From Thalia democratica (Eukaryota), in the NCBI GenBank assembly GCA_965202585.1, contig OZ241826.1:74090001-74154000 (forward strand): DNA of 64,000 nucleotides. Reading direction: 5' to 3'. Position numbers and translations under genes: made by a program. Below are positions 50,320 to 52,467 of the stretch, piece after piece. The notes beneath the pieces were generated by a model, which searched no databases, was not told the DNA's origin, and saw nothing but the letters and a program-made list of their open reading frames with translations. The number at the start of each line of letters is the position of its first letter. The first letter of the stretch is position 1.

Positions 50320-52467
50320 TAATTAAGTCTGATGTTACACAGAATGAAGTGGAAGGTAAAATTTTAGTTGAATACTATCAAAAAAACTTTATATTTTAAT
50401 TTCTAATAGTTTAAGTACTGGCTTGTTAAAATACCGATTAAAGTCGAAGCTAGTAGAAAATTAAAAAATATTAGTGTAATCTTTCCTTTTTTCATAAAGT
50501 TAGCATAACTATCTTTAAGGATATAATTTTTATCTTTGTTTGAAAATAATAAATATTAAGTCTATGCTTGTAAATAATGAACTTCATTATTGAACTAGCT
50601 TTTAAGATTAAGTCATGAAAGTTAATTATTTTACTGGCTATCTGTGTATAAATTTTTAAGTTTGTTATAGATTTCTTGTTCAAAATACTTACAAAAAATC
50701 TGCTAGAAGATGGAAAAAATAAAGAAAATCAAGACTGTAAGTTTATAAAAAAAATATTCTTTAAACTTTTAAACGTTTTTTTTTTCATTTATAATAATAA
50801 GTATATAAGAGTATATCAACTCTTATATCGTAAAAAGTTACAAATGCACCACTTAAGATTCTTTTTTAAATGTTTAGTATAATTGATAATAAACCAGAAC
50901 TATTTGGATAAATAAAAATACAACTTTAAAACTAATTTGAACGACTTATTTTAAAAAATGTCATCAATTTTTGTATTAAGTTTAAAATTTTACCAGTTAT
51001 ATTCGGAATTGTACACCACGCATTAGTCACTTCACTTGAAGATGCTGCTTATCAATTGACTTCTGATGAAGAAGACAAAATTTGTTTGTGCTTTTTATGT
51101 ATCAAAAAAGTAATTTACTGTCATATCAAAAAAAAAATGTAAGAAAAGCGAGATGCTTTTTATAAAAGATTAAATATTTAACAGATTTATTTTAATGCAA
51201 TAAAAAATTACTCTATTAAATTAAAAAACGATCTCAAAACTTAAAATTCAAACCAGACAAAAGAACTCTAGCTTACGATGTAACTAACAAACTTCTTAGA
51301 ACTTCTAGTTTGAAAGACAATAAGGAAAACAGAGATGGTTTATTTTAGTTTGTTTCTAACACAAAAAAAATACCACAAAACAACTTTAGATAATGAATAC
51401 AGATGTATTATTTTAAAACTTTGTAAAGAACTTTTTTAGCATTTTGTTGTGTTTCACTTAAAAAACTCTTTTTCGTTTGTAACTAAATCTATAATGCTGC
51501 AATTTTTACTAAATTTCATGTTTTTTAACAGCCATCTTTGCACTTATACACCAAGCAATAAACAAAATTACCGAAGTTGCCCACCATATACTTGATGACG
51601 AAGATGTATTGAAAAAAGGTATTTTAAAAGGGCCTCTACCTTTTTTTGGCGAAAATGATTGTAAGTTATATATTATTACTTTCTTCTTTAAAGATTTAAA
51701 TAAACTTGTAGTAGAAATCTATAAATATGTATATATATATAAATTTAATTTCAAAATTCTATGAATTTAAGTATATTTATTTAACTACATGAATATAAAA
51801 AAAAACTCTAATAAAATTAAACGAATAAATTTCAAATAATTTTGTTTTATGATTTAATTCCAACTTTTTCTTACTTAAACATACAAAGTGAGATAGCTAT
51901 CAAAGATTAAACACTAACTTTTCAATAACAAGCTGCTAACAAAAACAAACTCAATCCCTATATGTATGTTAAAACTAGTTATTTAATTAAAATATTAAAG
52001 TTATTTTACTAATTTTGTGAACTTAGCAACATTGTATTTAGACTGTAAACTAGTTGACAAATATTCCAAACAGTTACAAAGGTTTTGGCTAAACAAATTT
52101 CAAAAGACGCACTTCAAGCGAATGAGAGTAAAATAAAGAAGAATTGTAAGTATTTGTTGTATAATAAAACTAAAATTTAGTATTTTTAAACAAAATTTAA
52201 CATTAAAATAAAACGATACTGTTACATAACAAAAATAAAAATATCTATTTAGTAAAAAAATAAATGGTAATGATATATCTGTACTTTATTTAAAAAAAAA
52301 AGTTTAAAAAAGTTTATAGAACTGATCATTAACATTAGAATGTTGTATTAAACATAGCGCCAATAATTTAACATAAATTATTTCTCATTTAAGTGATATC
52401 TGGACTCGTACATTATTCAATTAAAGGTATTGGTGATGAAATGAAAAATGATAAAAACTATTTATAA
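50320..52467 (+). CDS. Candidate multi-exon gene (partial); exons 50320-50355, 50997-51083, 51532-51660, 52074-52145, 52394-52467
   Basis: Each exon is bounded by a YAG/AAG acceptor and a GT donor (gtaaaa, gtttgt, gtaagt, gtaagt). All are phase 1-1 and splice into one open frame. Three exons encode homologous starts (IFGIVHHAL, IFALIHQAI, ISGLVHYSI). The start exon was not identified. Confidence 0.6.

Follow-up and report, generated by a model that had tools for sequence, protein, structure and literature searches.

The window analysed comprises 64,000 nucleotides of the Thalia democratica contig OZ241826.1 and is A+T-rich, with a G+C content of 0.20–0.30 outside a few islands and of about 21% in non-coding DNA. 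Its features are collected in Table 1. Our interest lies in a chain of small exons on the forward strand, located about 1.85 kb downstream of a separate RING-finger gene. Further upstream sit two tandem, intronless BTB paralogues; an 85% identical orthologue is present on a Tara Oceans contig, along with paralogues at 30–43% identity. Another open reading frame, at 39% G+C, encodes BACK and Kelch repeats but lacks a BTB domain; an exon ahead of it may supply the N-terminal part.

Table 1. Features of the window, with hydrophobic moment and computed net charge of the three repeat units
Feature	Positions	Strand	Size and phase	Borders	Description	Core moment	Core charge, pH 7.4; pH 5.5	Whole-unit charge, pH 7.4
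Exon 1 (candidate)	50121–50181	+	20 codons plus one base	ATG; phase-1 donor G/GTGAAA	putative leader with 13-residue hydrophobic core
Exon 2 (first exon of the first-pass annotation)	50320–50355	+	36 nt, phase 1-1	acceptor tattttacag; donor GTAAAA	acidic linker; codon score above every null stretch
Exon 3	50997–51083	+	87 nt, phase 1-1	donor GTTTGT	repeat unit 1: hydrophobic core with two His, then acidic tail	0.14	+0.2; +1.8	−4.8
Exon 4	51532–51660	+	129 nt, phase 1-1	donor GTAAGT	repeat unit 2: predicted amphipathic helix with three His, acidic tail, 14-residue Gly/Pro tail	0.52	+0.3; +2.8	−2.7
Exon 5	52074–52145	+	72 nt, phase 1-1	donor GTAAGT	sole cationic unit (+4), without the repeat motif
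Exon 6	52394–52467	+	74 nt including stop	TAA stop	repeat unit 3, one His	0.36	+1.1; +1.9	+0.1
RING-finger gene	43546 to at least 48274	+			separate upstream neighbour
RING 5′ UTR exon	43546–43710	+
RING 5′ intron	43711–46254	+
RING main exon	from 46255	+			3′ UTR to at least 48274
RING ORF	46285–47475	+
BTB paralogue	29856–31421	+	521 aa		intronless
BTB paralogue	33508–35034	+	508 aa		intronless
BACK/Kelch ORF	8775–10238	+
Ty3/gypsy-type LTR retroelement	59420–63969	−
Reverse-transcriptase fragment	38658–39473	−
Cys-rich ORF	15018–15548	−	176 aa
Simple repeats	16292–16626; 18308–18717
Inverted repeats	45839–45919; 46110–46187				just 5′ of the RING coding exon
TGCAAAATTGTC-like unit, further occurrences	153–488; 11247–11525; 11874–12281

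A first-pass annotation, made from the letters alone, had proposed exons 2 to 6 as five small exons that splice in frame. Each is preceded by an AG with a T-rich tract ahead of it, and all but the last are followed by a GT. At every junction the intron falls behind the first base of a codon, giving phase 1 throughout. When joined, the five exons are open over 131 codons to the TAA, without frameshift or internal stop, and yield the same 131 residues as proposed, confirming the observation.

The base composition of these exons sets them apart from their surroundings. Four of the five have a G+C content of 0.31–0.35 (the last has 0.24) as against 0.17–0.23 in the introns, and for the 87- and 129-nt exons no window of matching length in 5.3 kb of non-coding flank reaches their G+C. 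For a codon log-likelihood ratio, the window's two A+T-rich BTB ORFs supplied the coding set and non-coding triplets the contrast; the null set consisted of 220 open non-coding stretches, each 23 codons or longer. Exons 2–5 scored above all 220 stretches and exon 6 ranked within the top 1.8%, and no concatenation of null stretches attained the mean codon score of the gene model. In a blind codon scan of 47480–56000 (+ strand, three frames) the top four segments all lay within the proposed exons, and no coding-like segment was observed in 47480–50320, a stretch that includes the gap between the RING 3′ UTR and exon 2. G+C, codon score, blind scan and the internal repeat described below are four independent lines that agree on a hidden spliced gene of symmetric phase-1 exons. 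Poly(A) and TATA motifs are present but carry no information, AATAAA having a frequency of 4.4 per kb in the flanks.

Three of the exons open with the motif I-[FS]-[GA]-[IL]-[VI]-H, placed directly after the split codon at the acceptor. The earlier reading of these exon starts as homologous holds up: ungapped 10-residue scores anchored at the exon start gave shuffle p values of <2e-4, <2e-4 and 2e-4, and ungapped scores over the whole shared length gave 1e-4, 5e-3 and 4e-3. At the nucleotide level, 44 of 87 bases are identical in an ungapped comparison of exon 3 with the first 87 nt of exon 4, where the background has a mean of 25.6, a standard deviation of 4.0 and a maximum of 41. Homologous units of the same phase therefore lie in register with the introns, and the exon-start scores together with this identity bear out the idea of one helix unit per exon, multiplied by duplication. 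Exon 4 contains an internal GT at 51619, and since its use would yield a unit of exactly 87 nt, the same as exon 3, it suggests that the 14-residue Gly/Pro tail was added through a shift of the donor. A 27-nt match between the acceptor region of exon 4 and 52965–52991 was dismissed as chance because neither an AG nor an open exon follows it.

Exons 2–5 contain no in-frame ATG, and translation must therefore begin in an exon further upstream. Looking for a signal-peptide exon, as the first-pass annotation had advised, we located a candidate with fitting phase. The ATG at 50121 opens 20 codons in which the hydrophobic core is followed by N-Q-S-K, and a single G then precedes GTGAAA at 50182, the only phase-1 GT ahead of the in-frame stop. 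Joining 50181 to 50320 forms a Val codon across an intron of 138 nt. Among the seven ATG-to-phase-1-GT candidates in 48274–50319, it is the nearest to exon 2 and the only signal-like one. By a crude test (a core of 7–15 residues) it resembles a signal peptide, with a mean Kyte–Doolittle hydropathy of 2.56 over the best 10 residues. Across the window 4.4% of such candidates are equally hydrophobic, which puts the chance of a hydrophobic ATG-ORF of this kind in the interval at roughly 0.15–0.3; such frames are not rare in A+T-rich DNA. The codon score of exon 1 is non-coding-like, as expected for a Phe/Leu-rich leader and equally for chance, and for this reason the exon, and secretion with it, are treated as inferred. 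At the candidate cleavage sites position −3 is V or F and position −1 is V or A, which is not the classical pattern. The product is probably secreted.

With this exon the model spans 50121–52467 (+) and comprises 459 nt encoding 152 residues with a pI of 5.6. The product contains no Cys, Arg or Trp; it has six His, two KK pairs and two N-x-S sequons. The five exons are real; together with the start exon they very probably encode an all-helical protein of 152 residues that is probably secreted and that grew by duplicating exons.

Three further upstream exons (44561–44578, 45494–45577 and 49855–49866) had also been suggested, which would place the RING gene within an intron of the hidden gene. 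The RING gene has a transcript structure of its own. The only relative of its product in the databases is 91% identical and lies on three Tara Oceans metatranscriptome contigs (L001–L003, 91–93% nucleotide identity), and these align to the window with 43546–43710 spliced straight to 46255 and a 3′ UTR reaching at least 48274. The 5′ UTR exon is 2.5 kb upstream of the coding exon. It follows that 44561–44578 and 45494–45577 lie within the RING gene's own 5′ intron, and both are skipped by the relative's transcripts. None of the three suggested exons contains an ATG, and the 12-nt segment 49855–49866 gave no discriminating score. The nested arrangement therefore lacks support; 45494–45577 could be an alternative RING 5′ exon or chance. 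The extent of the RING gene also limits the space available for upstream exons of the hidden gene. The RING ORF forms an island of 53% G+C amid surroundings of about 21%, contains at least four tandem 60-nt (20-residue) units at 46557–46827, and has the RING as its only Pfam domain.

Relatives of the hidden gene were sought with single exons (23–42 residues) or a profile of the three repeats in the database, PDB and Pfam searches, which exclude close relatives and not distant ones. A phmmer search of the 42-residue exon against 1.84 billion representative proteins gave 0 matches at E up to 0.001; its reach is such that it rules out relatives above about 55% identity in this exon, not more distant ones. 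The best result of a Pfam hmmscan with four exon peptides at E up to 10 was a chance-level match (E 0.03) to an unrelated model, and a PDB sequence search with two exons and the three-repeat profile returned nothing below E 0.6. No paralogue was detected when the exons and the joined product were compared with the window by tblastn. Scans of JGI metagenome contigs for the open stretches around exons 4 and 3 gave about 600 pattern matches each, none confirmed, and a full-text literature search with the motif strings retrieved no paper. Exact look-ups of three intronless neighbouring ORFs found no record in the protein collection, from which it follows that the assembly is absent from that collection. 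Homologues of the RING and BTB neighbours came up only in Tara Oceans assemblies (PRJEB4352 plus one JGI sample) at 85–92% nucleotide identity, which points to a marine planktonic eukaryote; none of these contigs extends as far as the gene. The gene is an orphan without close relatives and is probably lineage-restricted.

The predicted product combines hydrophobic, His-bearing segments with acidic ones. When exon 4 was modelled by itself, AlphaFold predicted helix at residues 2–21 and 23–28 and a disordered tail, with a mean pLDDT of 68. The chain after residue 15 has a computed net charge of −4.3 at pH 7.4, which becomes +1.1 at pH 5.5. Exon 5, the only cationic exon, lies outside the repeat and has a low mean hydrophobicity (−0.14). 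The KK pairs are found at residues 89–90, inside unit 2, and at 126–127, two residues before unit 3; none precedes units 1 or 2. The units had been described as His-rich amphipathic helices. As to His, this is apt for the three cores (six His in 49 residues) and not for the whole product (six in 152); as to amphipathicity, it is clearly so for core 2 only (moment 0.52), core 1 being plainly hydrophobic (0.14).

Two alternatives concern the gene model itself. One is that no functioning gene exists here, the exons being either an unexpressed relic or open segments that line up by accident; in our judgement this is very unlikely. Open segments of 69 nt or more with phase-1 AG..GT borders do occur about 1.5 times per kb of the window, and neither transcript, orthologue nor paralogue was found in the representative-protein search, the metagenome scans and the tblastn of the window. 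Against this, G+C, codon score and splice phase are concordant in all five exons, the homology of three of them is in register with their acceptors, and frameshifts and internal stops are absent. The other, that the five exons are only the 3′ end of a longer gene with upstream exons different from that at 50121 (for example 45494–45577 or unseen small exons) and a product that is not secreted, also appears unlikely. The non-coding score of exon 1 would be compatible with such a gene, as would the codon score of 45494–45577 (+6.8 bits, with AG and GT) and a second ATG candidate at 50008–50071. However, the same strand carries, from 43546 to at least 48274, the spliced RING transcript, which skips both 44561–44578 and 45494–45577, neither of which offers an ATG; the donor of 45494–45577 is weak (GTTAAA), and 47480–50320 is devoid of coding-like segments.

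The remaining alternatives concern function. In clavanin precursors, an acidic run and a Lys close the pro-piece. Noting this, and the His-rich amphipathic helices of clavanins and fish piscidins, the first-pass annotation favoured a multi-peptide defence or toxin precursor, in which each duplicated exon would supply one His-bearing helix that is cut from an acidic pro-protein and becomes membrane-active once its His are protonated. Several observations are consistent with this: a hydrophobic, His-containing core is followed by an acidic tail three times, the cores gain charge to reach +2 to +3 at pH 5.5, a candidate signal peptide is present, and a KK stands two residues ahead of unit 3. Clavanins, His-rich helical peptides of 23 residues from tunicate haemocytes, act in a pH-dependent manner, and an anionic pro-piece is a common feature of antimicrobial-peptide precursors (PMC2866484). 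Conventional antimicrobial peptides are, however, defined as cationic (PMC2866484). Here the whole product is anionic (about −4 net at pH 7.4), the cores carry only 0 to +1 at neutral pH, and the one cationic exon, 52074–52145, is not a repeat unit. There is no Arg, the two KK are the only dibasic sites, the first two unit borders have none, and no unit is flanked by basic processing sites on both sides. One core alone is clearly amphipathic, the hydrophobic moment of core 1 being as low as 0.14, and no exon or repeat profile has a named match in Pfam or PDB. The proposed precursor is thus quite unlikely, and the likeness to clavanins or piscidins is not sustained by any named relative of the exon peptides in those two collections. 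A more novel variant, a new family of pH-switched defence peptides in a marine planktonic eukaryote, would have an anionic precursor grown by one helix per exon, from which near-uncharged His helices are freed by a non-classical protease and act only in acidified compartments. Since every exon is symmetric, skipping any of them keeps the frame, so that alternative splicing could then vary the peptide cocktail. We regard this variant as highly improbable.

Among known systems, clavanins resemble the units in being short helices of His with Phe, Ile and Val whose charge rises on acidification and whose precursor has acidic stretches (PMC2866484; charges for the present units computed here). They differ in that no sequence match was obtained with single exons or the three-repeat profile (Pfam, PDB and the library of 1.84 billion proteins), and in that each clavanin precursor provides one net cationic peptide of about 23 residues, whereas here there are three units with cores almost without Lys or Arg in an anionic product in which no unit has classical processing sites on both sides. 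In the piscidin/pleurocidin family of fish, each small secreted precursor yields one peptide. These peptides are likewise His-containing amphipathic helices (PMC2866484, Table 2), yet the Pfam hmmscan with four exon peptides gave no such match at E up to 10, and charge and layout differ as they do for clavanins. Two further parallels are offered as leads only. Dermcidin-derived peptides are Cys-free helices with acidic residues and His, released from an anionic secreted precursor, a description that fits several traits of the present product; the PDB sequence search with exons and repeat profile nevertheless returned no such chain at E up to 10. Insect apolipophorin III, a secreted Cys-free chain of about 15–18 kDa with several helices, broad hydrophobic faces and internal repeats, is alike in its overall build, but Pfam and PDB sequence searches with the exons gave no match to it. 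As a category, rather than a family, orphan secreted-protein genes assembled from symmetric phase-1 exons agree with the locus in having a signal exon (here a candidate) that ends in phase 1, 1-1 exons, tandem duplication and a distribution limited to a narrow lineage. Lineage-specific defence, adhesion or matrix functions often reside in orphan secreted proteins of this sort; membership of the category says nothing on function.

The reading we prefer, with a probability only slightly above one half (about 0.55), is that of a lineage-restricted six-exon coding gene for a 152-residue, probably secreted helical-repeat protein that acts as an intact pH- or metal-responsive chain. The product would probably carry an N-terminal signal peptide, and the remaining 135 or so residues are predicted to be almost entirely helical. 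Its three homologous exon units, each a hydrophobic helix start with a conserved His at position 6 and then an acidic tail, would have arisen through duplication of one 87-nt exon, with a fourth, lysine-rich helix exon placed between units 2 and 3. Judging from composition, we think that the chain may act as an intact small helical bundle in which broad hydrophobic faces pack together. Packed helices fit better than free membrane-active peptides because the hydrophobic faces are broad, Arg is absent, dibasic sites are missing at the first two unit borders and the moment of core 1 is very low. Through its six His, the chain would change its net charge from about −4 at pH 7.4 to roughly +1 at pH 5.5, and this reversal on acidification, together with the conserved His at position 6 of the units, suggests pH or metal sensing. 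The protein may thus be a pH- or metal-responsive component of the extracellular space or a vesicle lumen, and not a string of excised cationic peptides. Weighing against the preferred reading are the non-coding-like score of the signal exon with its non-classical residues at −1 and −3, and the fact that the phmmer search with the 42-residue exon and the two metagenome scans found neither transcript nor orthologue although the neighbours have Tara Oceans relatives.

As it stands, the gene is an ordinary orphan of neat design rather than a proven antimicrobial system, and no particular function is indicated. If its expression is confirmed, it would be a clean small case of a gene invisible to ORF-based annotation (six exons of 36–129 nt), grown by tandem duplication of a single symmetric exon in non-coding DNA of about 21% G+C.

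Repetitive and mobile DNA is also found in the window, in which Rfam and tRNA scans gave nothing. The long ORF of the Ty3/gypsy-type element encodes protease, reverse transcriptase, RNase H and integrase, has about three tandem copies of a unit of some 43 residues in its N-terminal part, and is accompanied by a separate upstream ORF. The reverse-transcriptase fragment and the Cys-rich ORF, the latter without a Pfam match, are probably the remains of other mobile elements. The two simple-repeat tracts are G+C-richer and read as Pro-Asp and Ser-Gly runs on either strand. A short TGCAAAATTGTC-like unit makes up the inverted repeats ahead of the RING coding exon; it recurs at three other places in the window (Table 1) and looks like a MITE-like repeat family.
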